Assembly: GCA_964057225.1 (NCBI GenBank)
Contig: OZ059900.1
Location: 12,896,001 to 12,960,000 of the forward strand
From: Auanema rhodensis
Lineage: Eukaryota > Animalia > Nematoda
Direction: 5' to 3'
Length of the DNA: 64,000 bases
Below, piece after piece: positions 20,701 to 64,000 of the stretch. A program made the translations under genes and the position numbers. The notes beneath the pieces are model-generated. The model ran no database searches, had not been told where the DNA came from, and saw only the letters and a program-made list of their open reading frames with translations. Positions within the stretch are counted from its first letter, which is position 1. Each line of letters begins with the position of its first letter.

Positions 20701-20960
20701 TAAAATAATAAATTGTGAAAAGATTTTGTTAAAAAGTATTGTTTATGATGAATGTATATCTATTACATATATAATATATCAAATATTGATAGTTTTAACG
20801 AATGAGTATTGTAACTAAGGAGATAACTAAGAATCAATTTGAAAATAAATCAGAATCTCTTCTGATTACTTGAATTAATTTATGATAATTAAACTAAAAT
20901 TTGAAATAAACCTAACAATACAGTCCTAGTTATCTTCAACAGATAACTGTCACGTATGTT
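17768..20960 (-). repeat. Inverted block of the 358-bp satellite, about 9 copies, more diverged
   Basis: Reverse complement of the left array (TTTAACTCTTATTATTGAGACTAAATTA...), same 358-bp period. It carries variants not seen in the forward block (TATTGCAACT, GAACTAATATTG, AATACAGTCC, TAAGGAGAT). Confidence 0.98.
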
Positions 20961-21342
20961 ACATTTTGGAAAGCACACCACAAGTGTGCAGTCTTGAAAA
21001 CTGTCTGTCTTAGTATGATTATATAACACTATAGATGATTAAGTAATATGAATTTGAATATGAACATGACGTGTCTTTCACATTATACTTTGACCTGATC
21101 AAGCTTTGTATAGCTTTGTACACTGATCACATATACGGCGATAGGCTATAACAGTTTATAAGTTAACTGAATAGATTTGGTTTAATTACCCAAGTTAGAG
21201 GTAGTATCTCAATCTATCCAGAGAACTTCTGAGTTGGAAATACATTTTGGAAAGCACACCATGAGTGTGCAATATTGAAAACTGTCTGTCTTAGTATGAT
21301 TATATGACACTATAGATGCTAAAGTAACACGAATTTGAATAT
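20960..21342 (+). repeat. 1.4 diverged copies of the 281-bp SL-RNA repeat unit, inverted relative to the main array
   Basis: TACATTTTGGAAAGCACACC at 20960 and 21241 (281 bp apart) is the reverse complement of the unit at 24996-64000. Homology ends at GAATTTGAATAT (21342). Confidence 0.95.
21179..21273 (+). ncRNA. SL1: Spliced leader RNA gene (SL1-like), single complete plus-strand copy
   Basis: GGTTTAATTACCCAAGTTAGAG (21179-21200) matches nematode SL1 GGTTTAATTACCCAAGTTTGAG at 21/22 positions. It is followed by a GTA donor, a stem-loop, ACATTTTGGAA (Sm-type site) and a terminal hairpin GCACAC-CATGA-GTGTGC. The 3' end is approximate. Confidence 0.9.
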
Positions 21343-21349
21343 AATACTA

Positions 21350-21600: not shown

Positions 21601-21809
21601 ATAATGCTAAATGAATGGATTTTAATAAATTCCAAGGATCTGAGAATCTATGATTCGATAAGCCCTAAAGCCGTTCACCAATTTTCAACAGTCAAAACAA
21701 AGCATTACAAAAATTGCGTCCACCGGAGTTTATAGGCGGATAGCAAAATAACAAGTAACAGCCATTCCAAATGTAAGTTTTAAAATCTGTGATAATGAAT
21801 CGGACTTGG

Positions 21810-23678: not shown

Positions 23679-23691
23679 AATCAGATATTAT

Positions 23692-23698
23692 CTGAAAA
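23692..23698 (-). promoter_or_regulatory. Probable trans-splice acceptor (TTTTCAG) of the protease gene
   Basis: The minus strand reads TGTTTTCAG|ATAATATCTGATT-ATG. This is the nematode consensus acceptor 13 nt upstream of the start codon, preceded by an AT-rich outron-like tract. Confidence 0.65.
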
Positions 23699-24303
23699 CA
23701 AAGAATTAGTTATTCTTCAATATTTTTTGAGAGAAAGTGTTTTAAATAAGCTAGTTGAATATTAGGGAAGTAAGAAAAGCAGTTAACAAACTCAAAGTTA
23801 AGGATAAAATAACAATGATAATCACGAATGAGAAATTATGAAATCAACGCGAACTACAGAAGAAAGGAAGTCTCTTTTCTATAGTTAATGGAAGAATGTG
23901 ATGTTGGCAGTCTCTCTCCTTATTCTGCGTCTCTGCTCACGTGTCACTCTCATCACCCTTCCACTCTACATAGTCCAACGCGTTTGCGTCGCGTGCGCCT
24001 AGTTCAACTGGGACAAATGTGTGATTGTGCTCGGTCACAGTGAGGAAGAGAAAAGAAGGTCACACAAAGAGAAAGAGAAATTGCCAGGTTGTTATTTTAT
24101 CTTCTTGGTTTGTTTCGAAAAGGCAAAACAAATATCTTATTTGATTGAAGTCAAGTGAACAAAGTTAATACCTCAGGTGAGGTAGCCATGTTTGGGGTTC
24201 ATGGCTAGGTGGAAGTGAATTCACTTTCTAGTGAAGACATCCATTTTCACTGAACGTCCCCATTTCACAAAATTAAATAAGATATTTGTACCCAAAATTA
24301 TAA
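23699..24303. promoter_or_regulatory. Divergent intergenic region between protease and integrase; candidate bidirectional promoter or element end
   Basis: The two genes point away from each other. A CG-rich core ACGCGTTTGCGTCGCGTGCGCC (~23978-23999) is flanked by a pyrimidine-rich tract on the left and a purine-rich tract on the right. Confidence 0.35.
24169..24251. other. Four abutting short inverted repeats
   Basis: TACCTCA-gg-TGAGGTA (24169-24184), TAGCCATG-9nt-CATGGCTA (24183-24207), AAGTGAATTCACTT (24213-24226) and AGTGAA-10nt-TTCACT (24230-24251). Confidence 0.7.
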
Positions 24304-24999
24304 AATAAAAAAAAAACAAAAAAAAAAGAATTAGTATACTGTTTTAAATGTAAAAAATATAGTGATACTACTTACATATTTAATGTTGAAACAAGCTCGA
24401 AACGTTCTATGATAAAAGGGTTATGCCAAGATTGTAATACAATGAAGTGTAAGCTAATTCCAACAATCACAGGAGGTTCTGGATTAGAAGATATCAAGGA
24501 GGTTGAAATTCTTAGACAATCCACAAGATCCGAAGGTGAAAGAGATCTTTTAGAAAAAGCTTATTATTCTCCTAAAACAGGTTTCTGCGGTATCAATGAA
24601 CTATCAAGAGTAGCAAAGGTGTCACAGAAAAAGGTTAAAGAGTTTCTGAATGAACAAGATGTTTACACTCTATACAAACCAATTAGGAAGAACTTCAAGA
24701 GTCAAAGAGTTTACTTCAATGGAATTAATGATCAATGGCAATCAGATCTCGTAGAAATGATTTCCTACGCGGAAGAAAATAAAGGCTATAGATATCTTTT
24801 AACAATTATAGATTGTTTCAGTAAGTTTGCATGGGTAGTACCATTAAAAACTAAGACAGGTAAAGAAACTACAGATGCTTTGGAATCTATCTTTACAAAA
24901 AGTAAAAGAAAACCAAAAAAGATGCAAACTGATAATGGTAAGGAATATTATAATAAAGAAATGAATAAATTATTTAAATCTTTAGAAATTAATCACTAA
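24304..24999 (+). pseudogene. Maverick/Polinton-type retroviral-like (rve, DDE) integrase, 3'-truncated, with N-terminal CxxC..CxxC Zn-ribbon (first ATG at 24409)
   Basis: The motifs YYSPKTGFCG, QDVYTLYKPIRKNF, NDQWQSDL, YRYLLTIIDCFSKFAWVVPLKTKTG and PKKMQTDNGKEY match the Polinton integrase pattern. Two catalytic Asp are present; the Glu-bearing helix is missing. The TAA stop is supplied by the SL repeat. The frame is open from 24304 and encodes YCFKCKK before the ATG. Confidence 0.9.
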
Positions 25000-25015
25000 C
25001 TTGGGTAATTAAACC
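24996..25015 (-). ncRNA. Truncated SL gene: first 20 nt of leader fused to antisense integrase sequence
   Basis: The minus strand reads GGTTTAATTACCCAAGTTAG|TGATTAATTTCTAAAG. The upstream spacer (25016-25201) is intact; the donor, Sm site and hairpins are absent. Confidence 0.9.
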
Positions 25016-25201
25016 AAATCTATTCAGGAAACTTATGAACTGTTCTAGCCTATCGCCGTATATGTGATCAGTGTACAAAGCTATACAAAGCTTTATCCGG
25101 TCAAACTATAATGTAAAAGACGCGTCATGTTCATATTCAAATTTGTTTTGCTTTGGCATCTATAGTGTCATATAATCATACTAAGACAGACAGTTTTCAA
25201 T

Positions 25202-25296
25202 ATTGCACACTCATGGTGTGCTTTCCAAAATGTATTTCCAACTCAGAAGTTCTCTGGTTAGATTGAGATACTACCTCTAACTTGGGTAATTAAACC
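25202..25296 (-). ncRNA. SL1: First complete SL1-like RNA gene of the main array (representative copy)
   Basis: Minus strand: GGTTTAATTACCCAAGTTAGAG|GTAGTATCTCAA-TCTAACCAGAGAACTTCTGAGTTGGA-AATACATTTTGGAAA-GCACACCATGAGTGTGC-AAT, about 95 nt. The order of parts matches C. elegans SL1 RNA: leader, donor, stem II, Sm site, stem III. Confidence 0.92.
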
Positions 25297-28200
25297 AAAT
25301 CTATTCAGGAAACTTATGAACTGTTCTAGCCTATCGCCGTATATGTGATCAGTGTACAAAGCTATACAAAGCTTTATCCGGTCAAACTATAATGTAAAAG
25401 ACGCGTCATGTTCATATTCAAATTTGTTTTGCTTTGGCATCTATAGGGTCATATAATCATACTAAGACAGACAGTTTTCAATATTGCACACTCATGGTGT
25501 GCTTTCCAAAATGTATTTCCAACTCAGAAGTTCTCTGGTTAGATTGAGATACTACCTCTAACTTGGGTATTTAAACCAAATCTATTCAGGAAACTTATGA
25601 ACTGTTCTAGCCTATCGCCGTATATGTGATCAGTGTACAAAGCTATACAAAGCTTTATCCGGTCAAACTATAATGTAAAAGACGCGTCATGTTCATATTC
25701 AAATTTGTTTTGCTTTGGCATCTATAGTGTCATATAATCATACTAAGACAGACAGTTTTCAATATTGCACACTCATGGTGTGCTTTCCAAAATGTATTTC
25801 CAACTCAGAAGTTCTCTGGTTAGATTGAGATACTACCTCTAACTTGGGTAATTAAACCAAATCTATTCAGGAAACTTATGAACTGTTCTAGCCTATCGCC
25901 GTATAAGTGATCAGTGTACAAAGCTATACAAAGCTTTATCCAGTCAAACTATGATGTAAAAGACGCGTCATGTTCATATTCAAATTTGTTTTGCTTTGGC
26001 ATCTATAGTGTCATATAATCATACTAAGACAGACAGTTTTCAATATTGCACACTCATGGTGTGCTTTCCAAAATGTATTTCCAACTCAGAAGTTCTCTGG
26101 TTAGATTGAGATACTACCTCTAACTTGGGTAATTAAACCAAATCTATTCAGGAAACTTATGAACTGTTCTAGCCTATCGCCGTATATGTGATCAGTGTAC
26201 CAAGCTATACAAAGCTTTATCCGGTCAAACTATAATGTAAAAGACGCGTCATGTTCATATTCAAATTTGTTTTGCTTTGGCATCTATAGGGTCATATAAT
26301 CATACTAAGACAGACAGTTTTCAATATTGCACACTCATGGTGTGCTTTCCAAAATGTATTTCCAACTCAGAAGTTCTCTGGTTAGATTGAGATACTACCT
26401 CTAACTTGGGTAATTAAACCAAATCTATTCAGGAAACTTATGAACTGTTCTAGCCTATCGCCGTATATGTGATCAGTGTACAAAGCTATACAAAGCTTTA
26501 TCCGGTCAAACTATGATGTAAAAGACGCGTCATGTTCATATTCAAATTTGTTTTGCTTTGGCATCTATAGTGTCATATAATCATACTAAGACAGACAGTT
26601 TTCAATATTGCACACTCATGGTGTGCTTTCCAAAATGTATTTCCAACTCAGAAGTTCTCTGGTTAGATTGAGATACTACCTCTAACTTGGGTAATTAAAC
26701 CAAATCTATTCAGGAAACTTATGAACTGTTCTAGCCTATCGCCGTATATGTGATCAGTGTACCAAGCTATACAAAGCTTTATCCGGTCAAACTATAATGT
26801 AAAAGACGCGTCATGTTCATATTCAAATTTGTTTTGCTTTGGCATCTATAGGGTCATATAATCATACTAAGACAGACAGTTTTCAATATTGCACACTCAT
26901 GGTGTGCTTTCCAAAATGTATTTCCAACTCAGAAGTTCTCTGGTTAGATTGAGATACTACCTCTAACTTGGGTAATTAAACCAAATCTATTCAGGAAACT
27001 TATGAACTGTTCTAGCCTATCGCCGTATATGTGATCAGTGTACAAAGCTATACAAAGCTTAATCCGGTCAAACTATAATGTAAAAGACGCGTCATGTTCA
27101 TATTCAAATTTGTTTTGCTTTGGCATCTATAGTGTCATATAATCATACTAAGACAGACAGTTTTCAATATTGCACACTCATGGTGTGCTTTCCAAAATGT
27201 ATTTCCAACTCAGAAGTTCTCTGGTTAGATTGAGATACTACCTCTAACTTGGGTAATTAAACCAAATCTATTCAGGAAACTTATGAACTGTTCTAGCCTA
27301 TCGCCGTATATGTGATCAGTGTACAAAGCTATACAAAGCTTTATCCGGTCAAACTATAATGTAAAAGACGCGTCATGTTCATATTCAAATTTGTTTTGCT
27401 TTGGCATCTATAGTGTCATATAATCATACTAAGACAGACAGTTTTCAATATTGCACACTCATGGTGTGCTTTCCAAAATGTATTTCCAACTCAGAAGTTC
27501 TCTGGTTAGATTGAGATACTACCTCTAACTTGGGTAATTAAACCAAATCTATTCAGGAAACTTATGAACTGTTCTAGCCTATCGCCGTATAAGTGATCAG
27601 TGTACAAAGCTATACAAAGCTTTATCCAGTCAAACTATAATGTAAAAGACGCGTCATGTTCATATTCAAATTTGTTTTGCTTTGGCATCTATAGTGTCAT
27701 ATAATCATACTAAGACAGACAGTTTTCAATATTGCACACTCATGGTGTGCTTTCCAAAATGTATTTCCAACTCAGAAGTTCTCTGGTTAGATTGAGATAC
27801 TACCTCTAACTTGGGTAATTAAACCAAATCTATTCAGGAAACTTATGAACTGTTCTAGCCTATCGCCGTATAAGTGATCAGTGTACAAAGCTATACAAAG
27901 CTTTATCCAGTCAAACTATAATGTAAAAGACGCGTCATGTTCATATTCAAATTTGTTTTGCTTTGGCATCTATAGTGTCATATAATCATACTAAGACAGA
28001 CAGTTTTCAATATTGCACACTCATGGTGTGCTTTCCAAAATGTATTTCCAACTCAGAAGTTCTCTGGTTAGATTGAGATACTACCTCTAACTTGGGTAAT
28101 TAAACCAAATCTATTCAGGAAACTTATGAACTGTTCTAGCCTATCGCCGTATAAGTGATCAGTGTACAAAGCTATACAAAGCTTTATCCAGTCAAACTAT

Positions 28201-31200
28201 AATGTAGAAGACGCGTCATGTTCATAATCAAATTCATATTGCTTAATCATCTATAGTGTCATATAATCATACTAAGACAGACAGTTTTCAATATTGCACA
28301 CTCATGGTGTGCTTTCCAAAATGTATTTCCAACTCAGAAGTTCTCTGGTTAGATTGAGGTACTACCTCTAACTTGGGTAATTAAACCAAATCTATTCAGG
28401 AAACTTATGAACTGTTCTAGCCTATCGCCGTATAAGTGATCAGTGTACAAAGCTATACAAAGCTTTATCCAGTCAAACTATAATGTAGAAGACGCGTCAT
28501 GTTCATAATCAAATTCATATTGCTTAATCATCTATAGTGTCATATAATCATACTAAGACAGACAGTTTTCAATATTGCACACTCATGGTGTGCTTTCCAA
28601 AATGTATTTCCAACTCAGAAGTTCTCTGGTTAGATTGAGATACTACCTCTAACTTGGGTAATTAAACCAAATCTATTCAGGAAACTTATGAACTGTTCTA
28701 GCCTATCGCCGTATATGTGATCAGTGTACAAAGCTATACAAAGCTTTATCCGGTCAAACTATAATGTAAAAGACGCGTCATGTTCATATTCAAATTTGTT
28801 TTGCTTTGGCATCTATAGGGTCATATAATCATACTAAGACAGACAGTTTTCAATATTGCACACTCATGGTGTGCTTTCCAAAATGTATTTCCAACTCAGA
28901 AGTTCTCTGGTTAGATTGAGATACTACCTCTAACTTGGGTATTTAAACCAAATCTATTCAGGAAACTTATGAACTGTTCTAGCCTATCGCCGTATATGTG
29001 ATCAGTGTACAAAGCTATACAAAGCTTTATCCGGTCAAACTATAATGTAAAAGACGCGTCATGTTCATATTCAAATTTGTTTTGCTTTGGCATCTATAGT
29101 GTCATATAATCATACTAAGACAGACAGTTTTCAATATTGCACACTCATGGTGTGCTTTCCAAAATGTATTTCCAACTCAGAAGTTCTCTGGTTAGATTGA
29201 GATACTACCTCTAACTTGGGTAATTAAACCAAATCTATTCAGGAAACTTATGAACTGTTCTAGCCTATCGCCGTATAAGTGATCAGTGTACAAAGCTATA
29301 CAAAGCTTTATCCAGTCAAACTATGATGTAAAAGACGCGTCATGTTCATATTCAAATTTGTTTTGCTTTGGCATCTATAGTGTCATATAATCATACTAAG
29401 ACAGACAGTTTTCAATATTGCACACTCATGGTGTGCTTTCCAAAATGTATTTCCAACTCAGAAGTTCTCTGGTTAGATTGAGATACTACCTCTAACTTGG
29501 GTAATTAAACCAAATCTATTCAGGAAACTTATGAACTGTTCTAGCCTATCGCCGTATATGTGATCAGTGTACCAAGCTATACAAAGCTTTATCCGGTCAA
29601 ACTATAATGTAAAAGACGCGTCATGTTCATATTCAAATTTGTTTTGCTTTGGCATCTATAGGGTCATATAATCATACTAAGACAGACAGTTTTCAATATT
29701 GCACACTCATGGTGTGCTTTCCAAAATGTATTTCCAACTCAGAAGTTCTCTGGTTAGATTGAGATACTACCTCTAACTTGGGTAATTAAACCAAATCTAT
29801 TCAGGAAACTTATGAACTGTTCTAGCCTATCGCCGTATATGTGATCAGTGTACAAAGCTATACAAAGCTTTATCCGGTCAAACTATGATGTAAAAGACGC
29901 GTCATGTTCATATTCAAATTTGTTTTGCTTTGGCATCTATAGTGTCATATAATCATACTAAGACAGACAGTTTTCAATATTGCACACTCATGGTGTGCTT
30001 TCCAAAATGTATTTCCAACTCAGAAGTTCTCTGGTTAGATTGAGATACTACCTCTAACTTGGGTAATTAAACCAAATCTATTCAGGAAACTTATGAACTG
30101 TTCTAGCCTATCGCCGTATATGTGATCAGTGTACCAAGCTATACAAAGCTTTATCCGGTCAAACTATAATGTAAAAGACGCGTCATGTTCATATTCAAAT
30201 TTGTTTTGCTTTGGCATCTATAGGGTCATATAATCATACTAAGACAGACAGTTTTCAATATTGCACACTCATGGTGTGCTTTCCAAAATGTATTTCCAAC
30301 TCAGAAGTTCTCTGGTTAGATTGAGATACTACCTCTAACTTGGGTAATTAAACCAAATCTATTCAGGAAACTTATGAACTGTTCTAGCCTATCGCCGTAT
30401 ATGTGATCAGTGTACAAAGCTATACAAAGCTTAATCCGGTCAAACTATAATGTAAAAGACGCGTCATGTTCATATTCAAATTTGTTTTGCTTTGGCATCT
30501 ATAGTGTCATATAATCATACTAAGACAGACAGTTTTCAATATTGCACACTCATGGTGTGCTTTCCAAAATGTATTTCCAACTCAGAAGTTCTCTGGTTAG
30601 ATTGAGATACTACCTCTAACTTGGGTAATTAAACCAAATCTATTCAGGAAACTTATGAACTGTTCTAGCCTATCGCCGTATATGTGATCAGTGTACAAAG
30701 CTATACAAAGCTTTATCCGGTCAAACTATAATGTAAAAGACGCGTCATGTTCATATTCAAATTTGTTTTGCTTTGGCATCTATAGTGTCATATAATCATA
30801 CTAAGACAGACAGTTTTCAATATTGCACACTCATGGTGTGCTTTCCAAAATGTATTTCCAACTCAGAAGTTCTCTGGTTAGATTGAGATACTACCTCTAA
30901 CTTGGGTAATTAAACCAAATCTATTCAGGAAACTTATGAACTGTTCTAGCCTATCGCCGTATAAGTGATCAGTGTACAAAGCTATACAAAGCTTTATCCA
31001 GTCAAACTATAATGTAAAAGACGCGTCATGTTCATATTCAAATTTGTTTTGCTTTGGCATCTATAGTGTCATATAATCATACTAAGACAGACAGTTTTCA
31101 ATATTGCACACTCATGGTGTGCTTTCCAAAATGTATTTCCAACTCAGAAGTTCTCTGGTTAGATTGAGATACTACCTCTAACTTGGGTAATTAAACCAAA

Positions 31201-34200
31201 TCTATTCAGGAAACTTATGAACTGTTCTAGCCTATCGCCGTATAAGTGATCAGTGTACAAAGCTATACAAAGCTTTATCCAGTCAAACTATAATGTAAAA
31301 GACGCGTCATGTTCATATTCAAATTTGTTTTGCTTTGGCATCTATAGTGTCATATAATCATACTAAGACAGACAGTTTTCAATATTGCACACTCATGGTG
31401 TGCTTTCCAAAATGTATTTCCAACTCAGAAGTTCTCTGGTTAGATTGATATACTACCTCTAACTTGGGTAATTAAACCAAATCTATTCAGGAAACTTATG
31501 AACTGTTCTAGCGTATCGCCGTATAAGTGATCAGTGTACAAAGCTATACAAAGCTTTATCCGGTCAAACTATGATGTAAAAGACGCGTCATGTTCATATT
31601 CAAATTTGTTTTGCTTTGGCATCTATAGTGTCATATAATCATACTAAGACAGACAGTTTTCAATATTGCACACTCATGGTGTGCTTTCCAAAATGTATTT
31701 CCAACTCAGAAGTTCTCTGGTTAGATTGAGATACTACCTCTAACTTGGGTAATTAAACCAAATCTATTCAGGAAACTTATGAACTGTTCTAGCCTATCGC
31801 CGTATATGTGATCAGTGTACCAAGCTATACAAAGCTTTATCCGGTCAAACTATAATGTAAAAGACGCGTCATGTTCATATTCAAATTTGTTTTGCTTTGG
31901 CATCTATAGGGTCATATAATCATACTAAGACAGACAGTTTTCAATATTGCACACTCATGGTGTGCTTTCCAAAATGTATTTCCAACTCAGAAGTTCTCTG
32001 GTTAGATTGAGATACTACCTCTAACTTGGGTAATTAAACCAAATCTATTCAGGAAACTTATGAACTGTTCTAGCCTATCGCCGTATATGTGATCAGTGTA
32101 CAAAGCTATACAAAGCTTAATCCGGTCAAACTATAATGTAAAAGACGCGTCATGTTCATATTCAAATTTGTTTTGCTTTGGCATCTATAGTGTCATATAA
32201 TCATACTAAGACAGACAGTTTTCAATATTGCACACTCATGGTGTGCTTTCCAAAATGTATTTCCAACTCAGAAGTTCTCTGGTTAGATTGAGATACTACC
32301 TCTAACTTGGGTAATTAAACCAAATCTATTCAGGAAACTTATGAACTGTTCTAGCCTATCGCCGTATATGTGATCAGTGTACAAAGCTATACAAAGCTTT
32401 ATCCGGTCAAACTATAATGTAAAAGACGCGTCATGTTCATATTCAAATTTGTTTTGCTTTGGCATCTATAGTGTCATATAATCATACTAAGACAGACAGT
32501 TTTCAATATTGCACACTCATGGTGTGCTTTCCAAAATGTATTTCCAACTCAGAAGTTCTCTGGTTAGATTGAGATACTACCTCTAACTTGGGTAATTAAA
32601 CCAAATCTATTCAGGAAACTTATGAACTGTTCTAGCCTATCGCCGTATAAGTGATCAGTGTACAAAGCTATACAAAGCTTTATCCAGTCAAACTATAATG
32701 TAAAAGACGCGTCATGTTCATATTCAAATTTGTTTTGCTTTGGCATCTATAGTGTCATATAATCATACTAAGACAGACAGTTTTCAATATTGCACACTCA
32801 TGGTGTGCTTTCCAAAATGTATTTCCAACTCAGAAGTTCTCTGGTTAGATTGAGATACTACCTCTAACTTGGGTAATTAAACCAAATCTATTCAGGAAAC
32901 TTATGAACTGTTCTAGCCTATCGCCGTATAAGTGATCAGTGTACAAAGCTATACAAAGCTTTATCCAGTCAAACTATAATGTAAAAGACGCGTCATGTTC
33001 ATATTCAAATTTGTTTTGCTTTGGCATCTATAGGGTCATATAATCATACTAAGACAGACAGTTTTCAATATTGCACACTCATGGTGTGCTTTCCAAAATG
33101 TATTTCCAACTCAGAAGTTCTCTGGTTAGATTGAGATACTACCTCTAACTTGGGTAATTAAACCAAATCTATTCAGGAAACTTATGAACTGTTCTAGCCT
33201 ATCGCCGTATATGTGATCAGTGTACAAAGCTATACAAAGCTTTATCCGGTCAAACTATGATGTAAAAGACGCGTCATGTTCATATTCAAATTTGTTTTGC
33301 TTTGGCATCTATAGGGTCATATAATCATACTAAGACAGACAGTTTTCAATATTGCACACTCATGGTGTGCTTTCCAAAATGTATTTCCAACTCAGAAGTT
33401 CTCTGGTTAGATTGAGATACTACCTCTAACTTGGGTAATTAAACCAAATCTATTCAGGAAACTTATGAACTGTTCTAGCCTATCGCCGTATAAGTGATCA
33501 GTGTACAAAGCTATACAAAGCTTTATCCAGTCAAACTATAATGTAGAAGACGCGTCATGTTCATAATCAAATTCATATTGCTTAATCATCTATAGTGTCA
33601 TATAATCATACTAAGACAGACAGTTTTCAATATTGCACACTCATGGTGTGCTTTCCAAAATGTATTTCCAACTCAGAAGTTCTCTGGTTAGATTGAGGTA
33701 CTACCTCTAACTTGGGTAATTAAACCAAATCTATTCAGGAAACTTATGAACTGTTCTAGCCTATCGCCGTATAAGTGATCAGTGTACAAAGCTATACAAA
33801 GCTTTATCCAGTCAAACTATAATGTAAAAGACGCGTCATGTTCATATTCAAATTTGTTTTGCTTTGGCATCTATAGTGTCATATAATCATACTAAGACAG
33901 ACAGTTTTCAATATTGCACACTCATGGTGTGCTTTCCAAAATGTATTTCCAACTCAGAAGTTCTCTGGTTAGATTGAGATACTACCTCTAACTTGGGTAA
34001 TTAAACCAAATCTATTCAGGAAACTTATGAACTGTTCTAGCCTATCGCCGTATAAGTGATCAGTGTACAAAGCTATACAAAGCTTTATCCAGTCAAACTA
34101 TAATGTAGAAGACGCGTCATGTTCATAATCAAATTCATATTGCTTAATCATCTATAGTGTCATATAATCATACTAAGACAGACAGTTTTCAATATTGCAC

Positions 34201-37200
34201 ACTCATGGTGTGCTTTCCAAAATGTATTTCCAACTCAGAAGTTCTCTGGTTAGATTGAGGTACTACCTCTAACTTGGGTAATTAAACCAAATCTATTCAG
34301 GAAACTTATGAACTGTTCTAGCCTATCGCCGTATAAGTGATCAGTGTACAAAGCTATACAAAGCTTTATCCAGTCAAACTATAATGTAGAAGACGCGTCA
34401 TGTTCATAATCAAATTCATATTGCTTAATCATCTATAGTGTCATATAATCATACTAAGACAGACAGTTTTCAATATTGCACACTCATGGTGTGCTTTCCA
34501 AAATGTATTTCCAACTCAGAAGTTCTCTGGTTAGATTGAGATACTACCTCTAACTTGGGTAATTAAACCAAATCTATTCAGGAAACTTATGAACTGTTCT
34601 AGCCTATCGCCGTATAAGTGATCAGTGTACAAAGCTATACAAAGCTTTATCCAGTCAAACTATAATGTAGAAGACGCGTCATGTTCATAATCAAATTCAT
34701 ATTGCTTAATCATCTATAGTGTCATATAATCATACTAAGACAGACAGTTTTCAATATTGCACACTCATGGTGTGCTTTCCAAAATGTATTTCCAACTCAG
34801 AAGTTCTCTGGTTAGATTGAGATACTACCTCTAACTTGGGTAATTAAACCAAATCTATTCAGGAAACTTATGAACTGTTCTAGCCTATCGCCGTATAAGT
34901 GATCAGTGTACAAAGCTATACAAAGCTTTATCCAGTCAAACTATAATGTAGAAGACGCGTCATGTTCATAATCAAATTCATATTGCTTAATCATCTATAG
35001 TGTCATATAATCATACTAAGACAGACAGTTTTCAATATTGCACACTCATGGTGTGCTTTCCAAAATGTATTTCCAACTCAGAAGTTCTCTGGTTAGATTG
35101 AGATACTACCTCTAACTTGGGTAATTAAACCAAATCTATTCAGGAAACTTATGAACTGTTCTAGCCTATCGCCGTATAAGTGATCAGTGTACAAAGCTAT
35201 ACAAAGCTTTATCCAGTCAAACTATAATGTAGAAGACGCGTCATGTTCATAATCAAATTCATATTGCTTAATCATCTATAGTGTCATATAATCATACTAA
35301 GACAGACAGTTTTCAATATTGCACACTCATGGTGTGCTTTCCAAAATGTATTTCCAACTCAGAAGTTCTCTGGTTAGATTGAGATACTACCTCTAACTTG
35401 GGTAATTAAACCAAATCTATTCAGGAAACTTATGAACTGTTCTAGCCTATCGCCGTATAAGTGATCAGTGTACAAAGCTATACAAAGCTTTATCCAGTCA
35501 AACTATAATGTAGAAGACGCGTCATGTTCATAATCAAATTCATATTGCTTAATCATCTATAGTGTCATATAATCATACTAAGACAGACAGTTTTCAATAT
35601 TGCACACTCATGGTGTGCTTTCCAAAATGTATTTCCAACTCAGAAGTTCTCTGGTTAGATTGAGGTACTACCTCTAACTTGGGTAATTAAACCAAATCTA
35701 TTCAGGAAACTTATGAACTGTTCTAGCCTATCGCCGTATAAGTGATCAGTGTACAAAGCTATACAAAGCTTTATCCAGTCAAACTATAATGTAAAAGACG
35801 CGTCATGTTCATATTCAAATTTGTTTTGCTTTGGCATCTATAGTGTCATATAATCATACTAAGACAGACAGTTTTCAATATTGCACACTCATGGTGTGCT
35901 TTCCAAAATGTATTTCCAACTCAGAAGTTCTCTGGTTAGATTGAGATACTACCTCTAACTTGGGTAATTAAACCAAATCTATTCAGGAAACTTATGAACT
36001 GTTCTAGCCTATCGCCGTATAAGTGATCAGTGTACAAAGCTATACAAAGCTTTATCCAGTCAAACTATAATGTAAAAGACGCGTCATGTTCATATTCAAA
36101 TTTGTTTTGCTTTGGCATCTATAGTGTCATATAATCATACTAAGACAGACAGTTTTCAATATTGCACACTCATGGTGTGCTTTCCAAAATGTATTTCCAA
36201 CTCAGAAGTTCTCTGGTTAGATTGAGATACTACCTCTAACTTGGGTAATTAAACCAAATCTATTCAGGAAACTTATGAACTGTTCTAGCCTATCGCCGTA
36301 TATGTGATCAGTGTACAAAGCTATACAAAGCTTTATCCAGTCAAACTATAATGTAAAAGACGCGTCATGTTCATATTCAAATTTGTTTTGCTTTGGCATC
36401 TATAGTGTCATATAATCATACTAAGACAGACAGTTTTCAATATTGCACACTCATGGTGTGCTTTCCAAAATGTATTTCCAACTCAGAAGTTCTCTGGTTA
36501 GATTGAGATACTACCTCTAACTTGGGTAATTAAACCAAATCTATTCAGGAAACTTATGAACTGTTCTAGCCTATCGCCGTATATGTGATCAGTGTACAAA
36601 GCTATACAAAGCTTTATCCGGTCAAACTATAATGTAAAAGACGCGTCATGTTCATATTCAAATTTGTTTTGCTTTGGCATCTATAGTGTCATATAATCAT
36701 ACTAAGACAGACAGTTTTCAATATTGCACACTCATGGTGTGCTTTCCAAAATGTATTTCCAACTCAGAAGTTCTCTGGTTAGATTGAGATACTACCTCTA
36801 ACTTGGGTAATTAAACCAAATCTATTCAGGAAACTTATGAACTGTTCTAGCCTATCGCCGTATAAGTGATCAGTGTACAAAGCTATACAAAGCTTTATCC
36901 AGTCAAACTATAATGTAAAAGACGCGTCATGTTCATATTCAAATTTGTTTTGCTTTGGCATCTATAGTGTCATATAATCATACTAAGACAGACAGTTTTC
37001 AATATTGCACACTCATGGTGTGCTTTCCAAAATGTATTTCCAACTCAGAAGTTCTCTGGTTAGATTGAGGTACTACCTCTAACTTGGGTAATTAAACCAA
37101 ATCTATTCAGGAAACTTATGAACTGTTCTAGCCTATCGCCGTATAAGTGATCAGTGTACAAAGCTATACAAAGCTTTATCCGGTCAAACTATAATGTAAA

Positions 37201-52200: not shown

Positions 52201-55200
52201 CCAAAATGTATTTCCAACTCAGAAGTTCTCTGGTTAGATTGAGATACTACCTCTAACTTGGGTAATTAAACCAAATCTATTCAGGAAACTTATGAATTGT
52301 TCTAGCCTATCGCCGTATAAGTGATCAGTGTACAAAGCTATACAAAGCTTTATCCAGTCAAACTATAATGTAAAAGACGCGTCATGTTCATATTCAAATT
52401 TGTTTTGCTTTGGCATCTATAGGGTCATATAATCATACTAAGACAGACAGTTTTCAATATTGCACACTCATGGTGTGCTTTCCAAAATGTATTTCCAACT
52501 CAGAAGTTCTCTGGTTAGATTGAGATACTACCTCTAACTTGGGTAATTAAACCAAATCTATTCAGGAAACTTATGAACTGTTCTAGCCTATCGCCGTATA
52601 AGTGATCAGTGTACAAAGCTATACAAAGCTTTATCCGTTCAAACTATAATGTAAAAGACGCGTCATGTTCATATTCAAATTTGTTTTGCTTTGGCATCTA
52701 TAGGGTCATATAATCATACTAAGACAGACAGTTTTCAATATTGCACACTCATGGTGTGCTTTCCAAAATGTATTTCCAACTCAGAAGTTCTCTGGTTAGA
52801 TTGAGATACTACCTCTAACTTGGGTAATTAAACCAAATCTATTCAGGAAACTTATGAACTGTTCTAGCCTATCGCCGTATAAGTGATCAGTTAACAAAGC
52901 TATACAAAGCTTTATCCAGTCAAACTATAATGTAAAAGACGCGTCATGTTCATATTCAAATTTGTTTTGCTTTGGCATCTATAGGGTCATATAATCATAC
53001 TAAGACAGGCAGTTTTCAATATTGCACACTCATGGTGTGCTTTCCAAAATGTATTTCCAACTCAGAAGTTCTCTGGTTAGATTGAGATACTACCTCTAAC
53101 TTGGGTAATTAAACCAAATCTATTCAGGAAACTTATGAACTGTTCTAGCCTATCGCCGTATAAGTGATCAGTGTACAAAGCTATACAAAGCTTTATCCAG
53201 TCAAACTATAATGTAAAAGACGCGTCATGTTCATATTCAAATTTGTTTTGCTTTGGCATCTATAGTGTCATATAATCATACTAAGACAGACAGTTTTCAA
53301 TATTGCACACTCATGGTGTGCTTTCCAAAATGTATTTCCAACTCAGAAGTTCTCTGGTTAGATTGAGATACTACCTCTAACTTGGGTAATTAAACCAAAT
53401 CTATTCAGGAAACTTATGAACTGTTCTAGCCTATCGCCGTATAAGTGATCAGTGTACAAAGCTATACAAAGCTTTATCCAGTCAAACTATAATGTAAAAG
53501 ACGCGTCATGTTCATATTCAAATTTGTTTTGCTTTGGCATCTATAGTGTCATATAATCATACTAAGACAGACAGTTTTCAATATTGCACACTCATGGTGT
53601 GCTTTCCAAAATGTATTTCCAACTCAGAAGTTCTCTGGTTAGATTGAGATACTACCTCTAACTTGGGTAATTAAACCAAATCTATTCAGGAAACTTATGA
53701 ACTGTTCTAGCCTATCGCCGTATAAGTGATCAGTGTACAAAGCTATACAAAGCTTTATCCAGTCAAACTATAATGTAAAAGACGCGTCATGTTCATATTC
53801 AAATTTGTTTTGCTTTGGCATCTATAGTGTCATATAATCATACTAAGACAGACAGTTTTCAATATTGCACACTCATGGTGTGCTTTCCAAAATGTATTTC
53901 CAACTCAGAAGTTCTCTGGTTAGATTGAGATACTACCTCTAACTTGGGTAATTAAACCAAATCTATTCAGGAAACTTATGAACTGTTCTAGCCTATCGCC
54001 GTATAAGTGATCAGTGTACAAAGCTATACAAAGCTTTATCCGGTCAAACTATAATGTAAAAGACGCGCCATGTTCATATTCAAATTTGTTTTGCTTTGGC
54101 ATCTATAGTGTCATATAATCATACTAAGACAGACAGTTTTCAATATTGCACACTCATGGTGTGCTTTCCAAAATGTATTTCCAACTCAGAAGTTCTCTGG
54201 TTAGATTGAGATACTACCTCTAACTTGGGTAATTAAACCAAATCTATTCAGGAAACTTATGAACTGTTCTAGCCTATCGCCGTATAAGTGATCAGTGTAC
54301 AAAGCTATACAAAGCTTTATCCAGTCAAACTATAATGTAAAAGACGCGTCATGTTCATATTCAAATTTGTTTTGCTTTGGCATCTATAGTGTCATATAAT
54401 CATACTAAGACAGACAGTTTTCAATATTGCACACTCATGGTGTGCTTTCCAAAATGTATTTCCAACTCAGAAGTTCTCTGGTTAGATTGAGATACTACCT
54501 CTAACTTGGGTAATTAAACCAAATCTATTATGGAAACTTATGAACTGTTCTAGCCTATCGCCGTATAAGTGATCAGTGTACAAAGCTATACAAAGCTTTA
54601 TCCAGTCAAACTATAATGTAAAAGACGCGTCATGTTCATATTCGAATTTGTTTTGCTTTGGCATCTATAGTGTCATATAATCATACTAAGACAGACAGTT
54701 TTCAATATTGCACACTCATGGTGTGCTTTCCAAAATGTATTTCCAACTCAGAAGTTCTCTGGTTAGATTGAGATACTACCTCTAACTTGGGTAATTAAAC
54801 CAAATCTATTCAGGAAACTTATGAACTGTTCTAGCCTATCGCCGTATAAGTGATCAGTGTACAAAGCTATACAAAGCTTTATCCGGTCAAACTATAATGT
54901 AAAAGACGCGCCATGTTCATATTGAAATTTGTTTTGTTTTGGCATCTATAGTGTCATATAATCATACTAAGACAGACAGTTTTCAATATTGCACACTCAT
55001 GGTGTGCTTTCCAAAATGTATTTCCAACTCAGAAGTTCTCTGGTTAGATTGAGATACTACCTCTAACTTGGGTAATTAAACCAAATCTATTCAGGAAACT
55101 TATGAACTGTTCTAGCCTATCGCCGTATAAGTGATCAGTGTACAAAGCTATACAAAGCTTTATCCGGTCAAACTATAATGTAAAAGACGCGTCATGTTCA

Positions 55201-58200
55201 TATTCAAATTTGTTTTGCTTTGGCATCTATAGTGTCATATAATCATACTAAGACAGACAGTTTTCAATATTGCACACTCATGGTGTGCTTTCCAAAATGT
55301 ATTTCCAACTCAGAAGTTCTCTGGTTAGATTGAGATACTACCTCTAACTTGGGTAATTAAACCAAATCTATTCAGGAAACTTATGAACTGTTCTAGCCTA
55401 TCGCCGTATAAGTGATCAGTGTACAAAGCTATACAAAGCTTTATCCGGTCAAACTATAATGTAAAAGACGCGCCATGTTCATATTCAAATTTGTTTTGCT
55501 TTGGCATCTATAGTGTCATATAATCATACTAAGACAGACAGTTTTCAATATTGCACACTCATGGTGTGCTTTCCAAAATGTATTTCCAACTCAGAAGTTC
55601 TCTGGTTAGATTGAGATACTACCTCTAACTTGGGTAATTAAACCAAATCTATTCAGGAAACTTATGAACTGTTCTAGCCTATCGCCGTATATGTGATCAG
55701 TGTACAAAGCTATACAAAGCTTTATCCGGTCAAACTATAATGTAAAAGACGCGTCATGTTCATATTCAAATTTGTTTTGCTTTGGCATCTATAGGGTCAT
55801 ATAATCATACTAAGACAGACAGTTTTCAATATTGCACACTCATGGTGTGCTTTCCAAAATGTATTTCCAACTCAGAAGTTCTCTGGTTAGATTGAGATAC
55901 TACCTCTAACTTGGGTAATTAAACCAAATCTATTCAGGAAACTTATGAACTGTTCTAGCGTATCGCCGTATAAGTGATCAGTGTACAAAGCTATACAAAG
56001 CTTTATCCGGTCAAACTATAATGTAAAAGACGCGTCATGTTCATATTCAAATTTGTTTTGCTTTGGCATCTATAGTGTCATATAATCATACTAAGACAGA
56101 CAGTTTTCAATATTGCACACTCGTGGTGTGCTTTCCAAAATGTATTTCCAACTCAGAAGTTCTCTGGTTAGATTGAGATACTACCTCTAACTTGGGTAAT
56201 TAAACCAAATCTATTCAGGAAACTTATGAACTGTTCTAGCCTATCGCCGTATATGTGATCAGTGTACAAAGCTATACAAAGCTTTATCCGGTCAAACTAT
56301 AATGTAAAAGACGCGTCATGTTCATATTCGAATTTGTTTTGCTTTGGCATCTATAGTGTCATATAACCATACTAAGACAGACAGTTTTCAATATTGCACA
56401 CTCATGGTGTGCTTTCCAAAATGTATTTCCAACTCAGAAGTTCTCTGGTTAGATTGAGATACTACCTCTAACTTGGGTAATTAAACCAAATCTATTCAGG
56501 AAACTTATGAACTGTTCTAGCCTATCGCCGTATAAGTGATCAGTGTACAAAGCTATACAAAGCTTTATCCGGTCAAACTATAATGTAAAAGACGCGTCAT
56601 GTTCATATTCAAATTTGTTTTGATTTGGCATCTATAGGGTCATATAATCATACTAAGACAGGCAGTTTTCAATATTGCACACTCATGGTGTGCTTTCCAA
56701 AATGTATTTCCAACTCAGAAGTTCTCTGGTTAGATTGAGATACTACCTCTAACTTGGGTAATTAAACCAAATCTATTCAGGAAACTTATGAACTGTTCTA
56801 GCCTATCGCCGTATAAGTGATCAGTGTACAAAGCTATACAAAGCTTTATCCGGTCAAACTATAATGTAAAAGACGCGCCATGTTCATATTCAAATTTGTT
56901 TTGCTTTGGCATCTATAGTGTCATATAATCATACTAAGACAGACAGTTTTCAATATTGCACACTCATGGTGTGCTTTCCAAAATGTATTTCCAACTCAGA
57001 AGTTCTCTGGTTAGATTGAGATACTACCTCTAACTTGGGTAATTAAACCAAATCTATTCAGGAAACTTATGAACTGTTCTAGCCTATCGCCGTATAAGTG
57101 ATCAGTGTACAAAGCTATACAAAGCTTTATCCAGTCAAACTATAATGTAAAAGACGCGTCATGTTCATATTCAAATTTGTTTTGCTTTGGCATCTATAGT
57201 GTCATATAATCATACTAAGACAGACAGTTTTCAATATTGCACACTCATGGTGTGCTTTCCAAAATGTATTTCCAACTCAGAAGTTCTCTGGTTAGATTGA
57301 GATACTACCTCTAACTTGGGTAATTAAACCAAATCTATTATGGAAACTTATGAACTGTTCTAGCCTATCGCCGTATAAGTGATCAGTGTACAAAGCTATA
57401 CAAAGCTTTATCCAGTCAAACTATAATGTAAAAGACGCGTCATGTTCATATTCGAATTTGTTTTGCTTTGGCATCTATAGTGTCATATAATCATACTAAG
57501 ACAGACAGTTTTCAATATTGCACACTCATGGTGTGCTTTCCAAAATGTATTTCCAACTCAGAAGTTCTCTGGTTAGATTGAGATACTACCTCTAACTTGG
57601 GTAATTAAACCAAATCTATTCAGGAAACTTATGAACTGTTCTAGCCTATCGCCGTATAAGTGATCAGTGTACAAAGCTATACAAAGCTTTATCCGGTCAA
57701 ACTATAATGTAAAAGACGCGCCATGTTCATATTGAAATTTGTTTTGTTTTGGCATCTATAGTGTCATATAATCATACTAAGACAGACAGTTTTCAATATT
57801 GCACACTCATGGTGTGCTTTCCAAAATGTATTTCCAACTCAGAAGTTCTCTGGTTAGATTGAGATACTACCTCTAACTTGGGTAATTAAACCAAATCTAT
57901 TCAGGAAACTTATGAACTGTTCTAGCCTATCGCCGTATAAGTGATCAGTGTACAAAGCTATACAAAGCTTTATCCGGTCAAACTATAATGTAAAAGACGC
58001 GTCATGTTCATATTCAAATTTGTTTTGCTTTGGCATCTATAGTGTCATATAATCATACTAAGACAGACAGTTTTCAATATTGCACACTCATGGTGTGCTT
58101 TCCAAAATGTATTTCCAACTCAGAAGTTCTCTGGTTAGATTGAGATACTACCTCTAACTTGGGTAATTAAACCAAATCTATTCAGGAAACTTATGAACTG

Positions 58201-61200
58201 TTCTAGCCTATCGCCGTATAAGTGATCAGTGTACAAAGCTATACAAAGCTTTATCCGGTCAAACTATAATGTAAAAGACGCGCCATGTTCATATTCAAAT
58301 TTGTTTTGCTTTGGCATCTATAGTGTCATATAATCATACTAAGACAGACAGTTTTCAATATTGCACACTCATGGTGTGCTTTCCAAAATGTATTTCCAAC
58401 TCAGAAGTTCTCTGGTTAGATTGAGATACTACCTCTAACTTGGGTAATTAAACCAAATCTATTCAGGAAACTTATGAACTGTTCTAGCCTATCGCCGTAT
58501 ATGTGATCAGTGTACAAAGCTATACAAAGCTTTATCCGGTCAAACTATAATGTAAAAGACGCGTCATGTTCATATTCAAATTTGTTTTGCTTTGGCATCT
58601 ATAGGGTCATATAATCATACTAAGACAGACAGTTTTCAATATTGCACACTCATGGTGTGCTTTCCAAAATGTATTTCCAACTCAGAAGTTCTCTGGTTAG
58701 ATTGAGATACTACCTCTAACTTGGGTAATTAAACCAAATCTATTCAGGAAACTTATGAACTGTTCTAGCGTATCGCCGTATAAGTGATCAGTGTACAAAG
58801 CTATACAAAGCTTTATCCGGTCAAACTATAATGTAAAAGACGCGTCATGTTCATATTCAAATTTGTTTTGCTTTGGCATCTATAGTGTCATATAATCATA
58901 CTAAGACAGACAGTTTTCAATATTGCACACTCGTGGTGTGCTTTCCAAAATGTATTTCCAACTCAGAAGTTCTCTGGTTAGATTGAGATACTACCTCTAA
59001 CTTGGGTAATTAAACCAAATCTATTCAGGAAACTTATGAACTGTTCTAGCCTATCGCCGTATATGTGATCAGTGTACAAAGCTATACAAAGCTTTATCCG
59101 GTCAAACTATAATGTAAAAGACGCGTCATGTTCATATTCGAATTTGTTTTGCTTTGGCATCTATAGTGTCATATAACCATACTAAGACAGACAGTTTTCA
59201 ATATTGCACACTCATGGTGTGCTTTCCAAAATGTATTTCCAACTCAGAAGTTCTCTGGTTAGATTGAGATACTACCTCTAACTTGGGTAATTAAACCAAA
59301 TCTATTCAGGAAACTTATGAACTGTTCTAGCCTATCGCCGTATAAGTGATCAGTGTACAAAGCTATACAAAGCTTTATCCGGTCAAACTATAATGTAAAA
59401 GACGCGTCATGTTCATATTCAAATTTGTTTTGATTTGGCATCTATAGGGTCATATAATCATACTAAGACAGGCAGTTTTCAATATTGCACACTCATGGTG
59501 TGCTTTCCAAAATGTATTTCCAACTCAGAAGTTCTCTGGTTAGATTGAGATACTACCTCTAACTTGGGTAATTAAACCAAATCTATTCAGGAAACTTATG
59601 AACTGTTCTAGCCTATCGCCGTATATGTGATCAGTGTACAAAGCTATACAAAGCTTTATCCGGTCAAACTATAATGTAAAAGACGCGTCATGTTCATATT
59701 CGAATTTGTTTTGCTTTGGCATCTATAGTGTCATATAATCATACTAAGACAGACAGTTTTCAATATTGCACACTCATGGTGTGCTTTCCAAAATGTATTT
59801 CCAACTCAGAAGTTCTCTGGTTAGATTGAGATACTACCTCTAACTTGGGTAATTAAACCAAATCTATTCAGGAAACTTATGAACTGTTCTAGCCTATCGC
59901 CGTATAAGTGATCAGTGTACAAAGCTATACAAAGCTTTATCCAGTCAAACTATAATGTAAAAGACGCGTCATGTTCATATTCAAATTTGTTTTGCTTTGG
60001 CATCTATAGGGTCATATAATCATACTAAGACAGGCAGTTTTCAATATTGCACACTCATGGTGTGCTTTCCAAAATGTATTTCCAACTCAGAAGTTCTCTG
60101 GTTAGATTGAGATACTACCTCTAACTTGGGTAATTAAACCAAATCTATTCAGGAAACTTATGAATTGTTCTAGCCTATCGCCGTATAAGTGATCAGTGTA
60201 CAAAGCTATACAAAGCTTTATCCAGTCAAACTATAATGTAAAAGACGCGTCATGTTCATATTCGAATTTGTTTTGCTTTGGCATCTATAGGGTCATATAA
60301 TCATACTAAGACAGACAGTTTTCAATATTGCACACTCGTGGTGTGCTTTCCAAAATGTATTTCCAACTCAGAAGTTCTCTGGTTAGATTGAGATACTACC
60401 TCTAACTTGGGTAATTAAACCAAATCTATTCAGGAAACTTATGAACTGTTCTAGCCTATCGCCGTATATGTGATCAGTGTACAAAGCTATACAAAGCTTT
60501 ATCCGGTCAAACTATAATGTAAAAGACGCGTCATGTTCATATTCGAATTTGTTTTGCTTTGGCATCTATAGTGTCATATAACCATACTAAGACAGACAGT
60601 TTTCAATATTGCACACTCATGGTGTGCTTTCCAAAATGTATTTCCAACTCAGAAGTTCTCTGGTTAGATTGAGATACTACCTCTAACTTGGGTAATTAAA
60701 CCAAATCTATTCAGGAAACTTATGAACTGTTCTAGCCTATCGCCGTATAAGTGATCAGTGTACAAAGCTATACAAAGCTTTATCCGGTCAAACTATAATG
60801 TAAAAGACGCGTCATGTTCATATTCAAATTTGTTTTGATTTGGCATCTATAGGGTCATATAATCATACTAAGACAGGCAGTTTTCAATATTGCACACTCA
60901 TGGTGTGCTTTCCAAAATGTATTTCCAACTCAGAAGTTCTCTGGTTAGATTGAGATACTACCTCTAACTTGGGTAATTAAACCAAATCTATTCAGGAAAC
61001 TTATGAACTGTTCTAGCCTATCGCCGTATATGTGATCAGTGTACAAAGCTATACAAAGCTTTATCCGGTCAAACTATAATGTAAAAGACGCGTCATGTTC
61101 ATATTCGAATTTGTTTTGCTTTGGCATCTATAGTGTCATATAATCATACTAAGACAGACAGTTTTCAATATTGCACACTCATGGTGTGCTTTCCAAAATG

Positions 61201-64000
61201 TATTTCCAACTCAGAAGTTCTCTGGTTAGATTGAGATACTACCTCTAACTTGGGTAATTAAACCAAATCTATTCAGGAAACTTATGAACTGTTCTAGCCT
61301 ATCGCCGTATAAGTGATCAGTGTACAAAGCTATACAAAGCTTTATCCAGTCAAACTATAATGTAAAAGACGCGTCATGTTCATATTCAAATTTGTTTTGC
61401 TTTGGCATCTATAGGGTCATATAATCATACTAAGACAGGCAGTTTTCAATATTGCACACTCATGGTGTGCTTTCCAAAATGTATTTCCAACTCAGAAGTT
61501 CTCTGGTTAGATTGAGATACTACCTCTAACTTGGGTAATTAAACCAAATCTATTCAGGAAACTTATGAACTGTTCTAGCCTATCGCCGTATAAGTGATCA
61601 GTGTACAAAGCTATACAAAGCTTTATCCAGTCAAACTATAATGTAAAAGACGCGTCATGTTCATATTCGAATTTGTTTTGCTTTGGCATCTATAGGGTCA
61701 TATAATCATACTAAGACAGACAGTTTTCAATATTGCACACTCATGGTGTGCTTTCCAAAATGTATTTCCAACTCAGAAGTTCTCTGGTTAGATTGAGATA
61801 CTACCTCTAACTTGGGTAATTAAACCAAATCTATTCAGGAAACTTATGAATTGTTCTAGCCTATCGCCGTATAAGTGATCAGTGTACAAAGCTATACAAA
61901 GCTTTATCCAGTCAAACTATAATGTAAAAGACGCGTCATGTTCATATTCAAATTTGTTTTGCTTTGGCATCTATAGGGTCATATAATCATACTAAGACAG
62001 ACAGTTTTCAATATTGCACACTCATGGTGTGCTTTCCAAAATGTATTTCCAACTCAGAAGTTCTCTGGTTAGATTGAGATACTACCTCTAACTTGGGTAA
62101 TTAAACCAAATCTATTCAGGAAACTTATGAACTGTTCTAGCCTATCGCCGTATAAGTGATCAGTGTACAAAGCTATACAAAGCTTTATCCGTTCAAACTA
62201 TAATGTAAAAGACGCGTCATGTTCATATTCAAATTTGTTTTGCTTTGGCATCTATAGGGTCATATAATCATACTAAGACAGACAGTTTTCAATATTGCAC
62301 ACTCATGGTGTGCTTTCCAAAATGTATTTCCAACTCAGAAGTTCTCTGGTTAGATTGAGATACTACCTCTAACTTGGGTAATTAAACCAAATCTATTCAG
62401 GAAACTTATGAACTGTTCTAGCCTATCGCCGTATAAGTGATCAGTTAACAAAGCTATACAAAGCTTTATCCAGTCAAACTATAATGTAAAAGACGCGTCA
62501 TGTTCATATTCAAATTTGTTTTGCTTTGGCATCTATAGGGTCATATAATCATACTAAGACAGGCAGTTTTCAATATTGCACACTCATGGTGTGCTTTCCA
62601 AAATGTATTTCCAACTCAGAAGTTCTCTGGTTAGATTGAGATACTACCTCTAACTTGGGTAATTAAACCAAATCTATTCAGGAAACTTATGAATTGTTCT
62701 AGCCTATCGCCGTATAAGTGATCAGTGTACAAAGCTATACAAAGCTTTATCCAGTCAAACTATAATGTAATAGACGCGTCATGTTCATATTCAAATTTGT
62801 TTTGCTTTGGCATCTATAGTGTCATATAATCATACTAAGACAGACAGTTTTCAATATTGCACACTCATGGTGTGCTTTCCAAAATGTATTTCCAACTCAG
62901 AAGTTCTCTGGTTAGATTGAGATACTACCTCTAACTTGGGTAATTAAACCAAATCTATTCAGGAAACTTATGAACTGTTCTAGCCTATCGCCGTATAAGT
63001 GATCAGTGTACAAAGCTATACAAAGCTTTATCCAGTCAAACTATAATGTAAAAGACGCGTCATGTTCATATTCAAATTTGTTTTGCTTTGGCATCTATAG
63101 GGTCATATAATCATACTAAGACAGGCAGTTTTCAATATTGCACACTCATGGTGTGCTTTCCAAAATGTATTTCCAACTCAGAAGTTCTCTGGTTAGATTG
63201 AGATACTACCTCTAACTTGGGTAATTAAACCAAATCTATTCAGGAAACTTATGAATTGTTCTAGCCTATCGCCGTATAAGTGATCAGTGTACAAAGCTAT
63301 ACAAAGCTTTATCCAGTCAAACTATAATGTAAAAGACGCGTCATGTTCATATTCGAATTTGTTTTGCTTTGGCATCTATAGGGTCATATAATCATACTAA
63401 GACAGACAGTTTTCAATATTGCACACTCGTGGTGTGCTTTCCAAAATGTATTTCCAACTCAGAAGTTCTCTGGTTAGATTGAGATACTACCTCTAACTTG
63501 GGTAATTAAACCAAATCTATTCAGGAAACTTATGAACTGTTCTAGCCTATCGCCGTATATGTGATCAGTGTACAAAGCTATACAAAGCTTTATCCGGTCA
63601 AACTATAATGTAAAAGACGCGTCATGTTCATATTCGAATTTGTTTTGCTTTGGCATCTATAGTGTCATATAACCATACTAAGACAGACAGTTTTCAATAT
63701 TGCACACTCATGGTGTGCTTTCCAAAATGTATTTCCAACTCAGAAGTTCTCTGGTTAGATTGAGATACTACCTCTAACTTGGGTAATTAAACCAAATCTA
63801 TTCAGGAAACTTATGAACTGTTCTAGCCTATCGCCGTATAAGTGATCAGTGTACAAAGCTATACAAAGCTTTATCCGGTCAAACTATAATGTAAAAGACG
63901 CGTCATGTTCATATTCAAATTTGTTTTGATTTGGCATCTATAGGGTCATATAATCATACTAAGACAGGCAGTTTTCAATATTGCACACTCATGGTGTGCT

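Follow-up and report, generated by a model that had tools for sequence, protein, structure and literature searches.

The window analysed here, a 64-kb stretch of nematode DNA, is occupied from position 24996 up to its end by a single tandem array with a period of 281 bp, for which Tandem Repeats Finder gave 138.8 copies with 98% matches and 0% indels; the array continues past the window end and the 39 kb are its visible part only. A fuzzy search of the window located 139 leader sequences on the minus strand, all 138 spacings between them being exactly 281 bp. The preliminary description of this locus had recognised in the 281-bp "satellite" a ~39-kb array of spliced-leader (SL) RNA genes, each unit having on the minus strand a leader followed by GTA, two stem-loops and an Sm motif, and this layout was found again in 138 of the 139 head-to-tail units (Table 1). 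The remaining unit, at the low-coordinate edge, is broken inside the leader at nt 20, and the array is bordered there by a truncated rve-integrase ORF (24409–24999, plus strand), the stop codon of which is supplied by array sequence. On the minus strand of the array, AGTTAGAG/GTAGTA and ACATTTTGGAA were counted 138 times each and the exact stem III palindrome 133 times, and no unit has an indel, a broken donor or a broken Sm site. Site-haplotype strings recur in runs of at least 10 units (e.g. copies 11–25, 26–35 and 45–59), and two local sub-families, marked by a downstream variant block, can be distinguished in the array. Such recurring haplotype runs are characteristic of unequal crossing-over of blocks of several units.

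Table 1. Position and strand of the array, of the parts of one example unit and of the inverted fragment in the window.
Feature	Position	Strand	Remarks
Array of 281-bp units	24996..64000	-	139 units: 138 complete and 1 truncated at the low-coordinate edge
Truncated edge unit	24996..25135	-	Upstream region and leader nt 1-20 only; adjoins the integrase ORF
Example SL RNA gene, ~100 nt (3' end inferred)	25197..25296	-	Rfam SL1 alignment 25202-25296; fold -26.3 kcal/mol, z -2.65
Leader, 22 nt, GGTTTAATTACCCAAGTTAGAG	25275..25296	-	A19 instead of T19
GT splice donor directly 3' of the leader	25273..25274	-	AGTTAGAG/GTAGTA in 138 units
Stem-loop II, RNA nt 35-60	25237..25262	-	10 bp, one bulge; constrained fold
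Sm-site region ACAUUUUGGAA, core AUUUUGG	25223..25233	-	Single-stranded between stems II and III; 138 copies
Stem-loop III, RNA nt 76-92	25205..25221	-	Perfect 6-bp stem, 5-nt loop
Candidate promoter block, -78 to -31	25327..25374	-	Best-conserved upstream segment
Inverted fragment, 1.36 units	20960..21342	+	~7% diverged; complete gene with leader at 21179-21200; preceding unit truncated to positions 63-161

SL1 repeats linked to 5S represent the organisation of the C. elegans, Brugia and Ascaris type. The feature that defines such repeats, a 5S gene in the unit, is absent from the 281-bp array, since 281 bp leave no room for it, and at the Rfam gathering thresholds no 5S_rRNA match was obtained anywhere in the 64-kb window.

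The leader sequence is exact in 135 of the 139 copies, the other four having a one-base change each (A8 twice, G6 once and AGTG once, the last in the truncated edge unit). Comparison with the canonical SL1 leader GGTTTAATTACCCAAGTTTGAG demonstrated identity in 21 of 22 positions, the only mismatch being at position 19, where canonical SL1 has T; the leader of the array thus ends with ...AAGTTAGAG and canonical SL1 with ...AAGTTTGAG. The preliminary description had noted this T19A change in every copy read, and A19 is indeed present in all 139 leaders. A canonical leader ending with ...TTTGAG was found on neither strand of the 64-kb window. The spacing GGTTT-5-CCCA-6-AG as well as the terminal GAG agree with the rules that define the SL1 class of leaders (PMC1657053).

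With regard to the RNA downstream of the leader, the GAG/GUAGUA donor of the 138 units is able to pair within stem I, as is characteristic of SL1. Stem I may be formed by nt 7–12 with nt 22–27, the donor being inside the stem and position 19 in the loop, so that the donor helix is left undisturbed by T19A. The predicted Sm site is of the AAUUUUGG type and lies unpaired between the 10-bp and the 6-bp stems, again in the manner of SL1. The Sm region reads AAAUUUUGGAA in the Rfam consensus and ACAUUUUGGAA in the array RNA; the core AUUUUGG is intact and the base preceding it is C in the array RNA vs A in the consensus, in agreement with the CA in place of AA pointed out earlier. For the classical fold of three stems, in which the Sm site is left free, the calculated energy is −23.5 kcal/mol, which is within 2.8 kcal/mol of the minimum (−26.3 kcal/mol, z −2.65). 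The minimum-energy fold pairs leader nt 12–24 with nt 47–59, i.e. with the 3' strand of stem II. This strand is able to pair either with its normal partner or with the leader/donor region (window 25238–25285; RNA nt 12–24/47–59), and therefore the two folds are mutually exclusive. The minimum-energy helix contains an A19-U52 pair, and U at position 19 costs 2 kcal/mol; in the modelled folds A19 thus favours the donor-sequestering one by that amount. Furthermore, in the free 22-nt leader with A19 the pair U5-A19 permits a continuous 7-bp hairpin (nt 3–9 with 15–21), which the canonical T19 leader, having U5/U19 instead, is unable to form.

The preliminary description had proposed a comparison with the Rfam covariance models, the outcome of which is divided. 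With permissive filters applied to 901 nt, the alignment to RF00198, the SL1 model, extends from end to end (positions 1–103 of 103), but the score of 38 bits (E 6.5e-5) remains below the SL1 gathering score of 75 bits, and at the curated gathering thresholds the whole window yields no matches, so that by the gathering score the RNA is not a member of RF00198. All the units tested gave similar values, in the range of 36.5–38 bits with E from 6.5e-5 to 1.4e-4. Posterior probabilities of the alignment are high in the leader, in the Sm region and over stem III, and the fit is poor for the model's stems I and II. S15-leader matches, all weak (E 0.3–2.5), were rejected as chance. Since both the anatomy and the class rules for the leader (PMC1657053) fit, the array RNA is to be classified, as judged from its sequence and predicted folds, as a divergent SL1-type RNA outside the formal Rfam membership.

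The distribution of polymorphism within the unit follows the limits of this RNA. When the 138 complete copies are compared, the per-site nucleotide diversity of RNA nt 1–100 amounts to 0.0027, vs 0.0148 for the 120 nt upstream and 0.0318 for the 61 nt downstream, a 5–12-fold reduction over the stretch that encodes the RNA. A minor allele present in three or more copies was seen at 2 of the 100 sites of the RNA part and at 25 of the 181 spacer sites (p 0.001), and the complete gene of the inverted fragment differs from the array at 1 of 100 positions in the RNA part, namely at nt 39, vs 15 of 183 in the flanks (p 0.013), both p-values being optimistic because the array copies are related by descent and are not independent. 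The leaderless partial unit beside the inverted gene has accumulated 4 changes in the 38 positions of nt 63–100, in which the complete copy has none. The sparing of the RNA part both in the array and in the inverted copy argues for selection on the RNA. Taken together with the SL1 alignment and the anatomy, this depletion of polymorphism bears out the identification of the array as SL RNA genes with a T19A SL1 leader.

Upstream of the gene, comparison of the array with the inverted copy revealed a well-conserved block from −78 to −31, with only 1 of 48 nt changed vs 10 of 72 in the remaining upstream region, which is likely to be a promoter element of the snRNA type. The block contains a 10-bp direct repeat, AGCTTTGTA(T/C), present twice at −77 to −58 (25354–25373). 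A GTTTC motif at −16 was dropped as a promoter element, being changed in the inverted copy. A 291-bp form of the unit, found in a contig of a public sequencing run (X1), has a 10-nt insertion at 25354 representing a third copy of the direct repeat as well as G>A at 25318; its RNA-coding part is unchanged and the differences are confined to the upstream region. The insertion moves the upstream sequence by one helical turn.

On the low-coordinate side, the array is separated from the inverted fragment, which the preliminary description had not mentioned, by a 3.65-kb segment (within 20960–24999) that carries a duplicated serine-protease-like gene on the minus strand and the truncated rve integrase on the plus strand. 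The segment is thus flanked by SL-unit sequence in opposite orientations (20960–21342, plus strand; array from 24996, minus strand) and appears to reflect an inversion or insertion whose breakpoints fall within SL units. At 21834–22790 a stretch of 479 bp is tandemly duplicated (2.0 copies, 97% matches), and with it a protease exon containing the GDSGGP motif, so that two near-identical ORFs of 157–158 aa are present. The nearest relatives of the integrase bordering the array are Maverick-type integrases of Caenorhabditis and Heterorhabditis, a kinship that was not relied on because Maverick-type elements move between species. Positions 1–20958 are filled by an AT-rich satellite of 358 bp (49.6 copies, 99% matches), which reverses at 17766/17782, is followed by 8.9 further reverse copies and ends directly against the inverted SL fragment.

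A search of public sequencing runs returned ten runs in the form of assembler contigs labelled only "RNA?". When contigs were compared with one unit, the array unit was present in two runs and in none of the contigs of two others (X5 and X7). One contig spans the whole unit and its spacer, this being the 291-bp form, and two are derived from the inverted copy and extend into its own flank; these contigs cover the spacer too and do not demonstrate transcription. No loose ends at the donor site were found in the run contigs. One of the inverted-copy contigs stops at leader nt 12, an end uninformative on the transcription start because it fits an assembly-graph branch point around the nt-39 difference. 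The last 20 nt of the leader were found at 13 loci in metagenome contigs, with no SL gene and no trans-spliced mRNA junction among them: one locus lies in a bacterial-looking coding region and the other 12 are members of a single repeat family from another organism, without the preceding GG or following GT. In this repeat (L001–L005 and L007–L013) (A/T)TTTTAATTACCCAAGTTAGAG is followed by TACAAAATCGCG, so that 20 of 22 nt are common to the array leader; it probably represents a chance 20-mer multiplied by the repeat. Viral contigs gave no matches to the leader with its donor, and the Logan contigs of homologues contained no leader. In the relevant papers searched the strings of the leader, its 3' half, the intron, the Sm region and stem III were not found.

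Observed directly were the build of the units, their alignment to the SL1 model and the distribution of polymorphism; from these we infer transcription, Sm binding, trans-splicing and a role as main SL1 as follows. Each 281-bp unit would constitute an entire gene for a small RNA of the nematode SL1 type, its promoter block at about −78 to −31, probably a proximal element of the snRNA type, being read by RNA polymerase II. The product would be an RNA of ~100 nt, in which the first 22 nt serve as the leader and the GU donor is paired into stem I (nt 7–12/22–27), followed by stem II, the unpaired Sm site and stem III; assembled into an Sm snRNP, it would serve in trans-splicing as the donor of the leader that mRNAs receive at their 5' ends. 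Arranged head to tail without 5S, the genes would be homogenised by unequal crossing-over of multi-unit blocks, and selection would purge changes in the RNA-coding part. The preliminary description had considered a main SL locus with a diverged leader, a specialised paralogue family and a selfishly amplified one. That the units of the array are working SL RNA genes is given a probability of roughly 0.8. The further step, that these working genes also supply the main SL1 of the species, still appears probable, if with clearly less confidence.

The constraint on the RNA part would fit equally well with working genes of a secondary paralogue, a canonical SL1 or another major SL being encoded elsewhere and the variant leader being given to part of the mRNAs or used at certain stages. 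Such a pattern is seen in Meloidogyne with Mi-SL1a vs Mi-SL1b/SL1M: among ESTs of M. incognita the variant used most is another than the satellite-borne one (PMC9673304) and SL1M is reported to be differentially used (PMC1657053), and many SL variants are employed by both H. glycines (PMC6362198) and S. ratti (PMC1657053). A secondary role is nevertheless considered unlikely, because the window lacks the canonical leader, a weak negative, and a copy number as high as that of the array is more usual for a main SL.

Slightly less probable still is a dead or selfish satellite, i.e. an SL RNA gene amplified by unequal crossing-over that is untranscribed or unused and intact only through its youth. 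A young homogeneous array would appear intact even if dead, and the copies here are 98–99% alike with recent block duplications; in addition, the surroundings consist of other satellites (the 358-bp array at 1–20958) and transposon fragments, the edge of the array is a rearrangement breakpoint, the Rfam score is sub-threshold and the run contigs gave no demonstration of expression. What speaks against mere youth is that variation is depleted precisely in the RNA-coding 100 nt, that the outside copy, 7% diverged, is equally spared in its RNA part and the adjacent leaderless partial unit has drifted, and that donor, Sm site and length are intact in every unit.

If the units are working genes supplying the main SL1, the A19 leader might even be the only or dominant SL1 of this nematode, encoded in 5S-free arrays, although this strongest form of the proposal is held with somewhat less than even confidence. 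On that reading, the U5-A19 pair of the modelled leader hairpin possibly tunes the translation of TMG-capped mRNAs. The SL1 leader is otherwise highly conserved in nematodes, and it is an old question whether it is conserved for transcription, snRNP assembly or translation. As the main leader, A19 would mark one changeable position in SL1 and would bear on why the leader is conserved; as the sole or dominant one, it would offer a rare natural test of SL1 conservation if the host is a rhabditine, at which the nearest relatives of the integrase weakly hint. The array is in this respect a modest but real natural data point on changeable leader positions, and its practical value lies in annotation. 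Since repeat maskers would hide the array as satellite, the A19 leader has to be supplied when the genome of this species is annotated or analysed with SL-aware pipelines, be it for calling trans-splice sites, for operon prediction or for the design of full-length cDNA primers; a probe for canonical SL1 would have, near its 3' end, a mismatch to the A19 leader.

Among known SL systems, the SL1 genes of C. elegans (RF00198) resemble the array in forming a near-monomorphic tandem array whose RNA has a 22-nt leader, a donor, three stems and an Sm site. The C. elegans array is monomorphic, with ~110 genes in a common repeat with 5S (PMC1657053), and differs in the T19 leader and in the 1-kb 5S-SL1 unit from the A19 leader and the 281-bp unit without 5S described here; outside the leader and the Sm site, the array RNA has diverged from RF00198 enough to account for 38 vs 75 bits. 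In Pristionchus pacificus 187 SL1 loci, a few of them variant, are likewise unlinked to 5S (PMC4138322), but those loci are reported not to be spatially clustered, whereas the array described here is dense. That the SL1 leader is changeable and that non-canonical leaders can dominate is documented by Strongyloides ratti, Globodera and Heterodera glycines (PMC1657053, PMC6362198): S. ratti uses only SL1-like variants and may lack canonical SL1 (PMC1657053), and H. glycines prefers a species-specific leader (PMC6362198). These nematodes possess many hypervariable leaders in dispersed or small gene sets, whereas a single variant is fixed in all copies of the array.

The closest parallel is MelSat01/INC of Meloidogyne, a 295-bp satellite the monomer of which is the Mi-SL1b gene, with the leader ...AAGTTTAAG/GT corresponding to SL1M (PMC9673304); it is moderately transcribed, and its SL RNA part shows little variability, the rest of the monomer more (PMC9673304). 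The array shares all the features of an SL-gene satellite of this type, i.e. a short unit with one SL gene per monomer, a one-base SL1 variant, a GT donor, an Sm site, no 5S and an SL RNA part less variable than the rest. The rarity implied by the preliminary description was thus overstated, SL1 variants and an SL-gene satellite having already been described (PMC1657053, PMC9673304, PMC6362198). The differences concern the variant itself and its documentation: MelSat01 has G20A in 295 bp, known from cDNAs, and the array T19A in 281 bp, known from DNA. A root-knot nematode (Meloidogyne) as the source of the window was rejected, because the MelSat01 consensus carries another one-base change in its leader and its body is unrelated. 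What the two units have in common is limited to the leader and the Sm core, the intron part and the spacer being unrelated, and for this reason the array is regarded as a separate instance of the MelSat01-type organisation. It adds a second, independent example of an SL gene that behaves as a satellite and is unlinked to 5S, and is most likely, from sequence comparison, a further case of the known SL-gene satellite organisation realised in a separate element.
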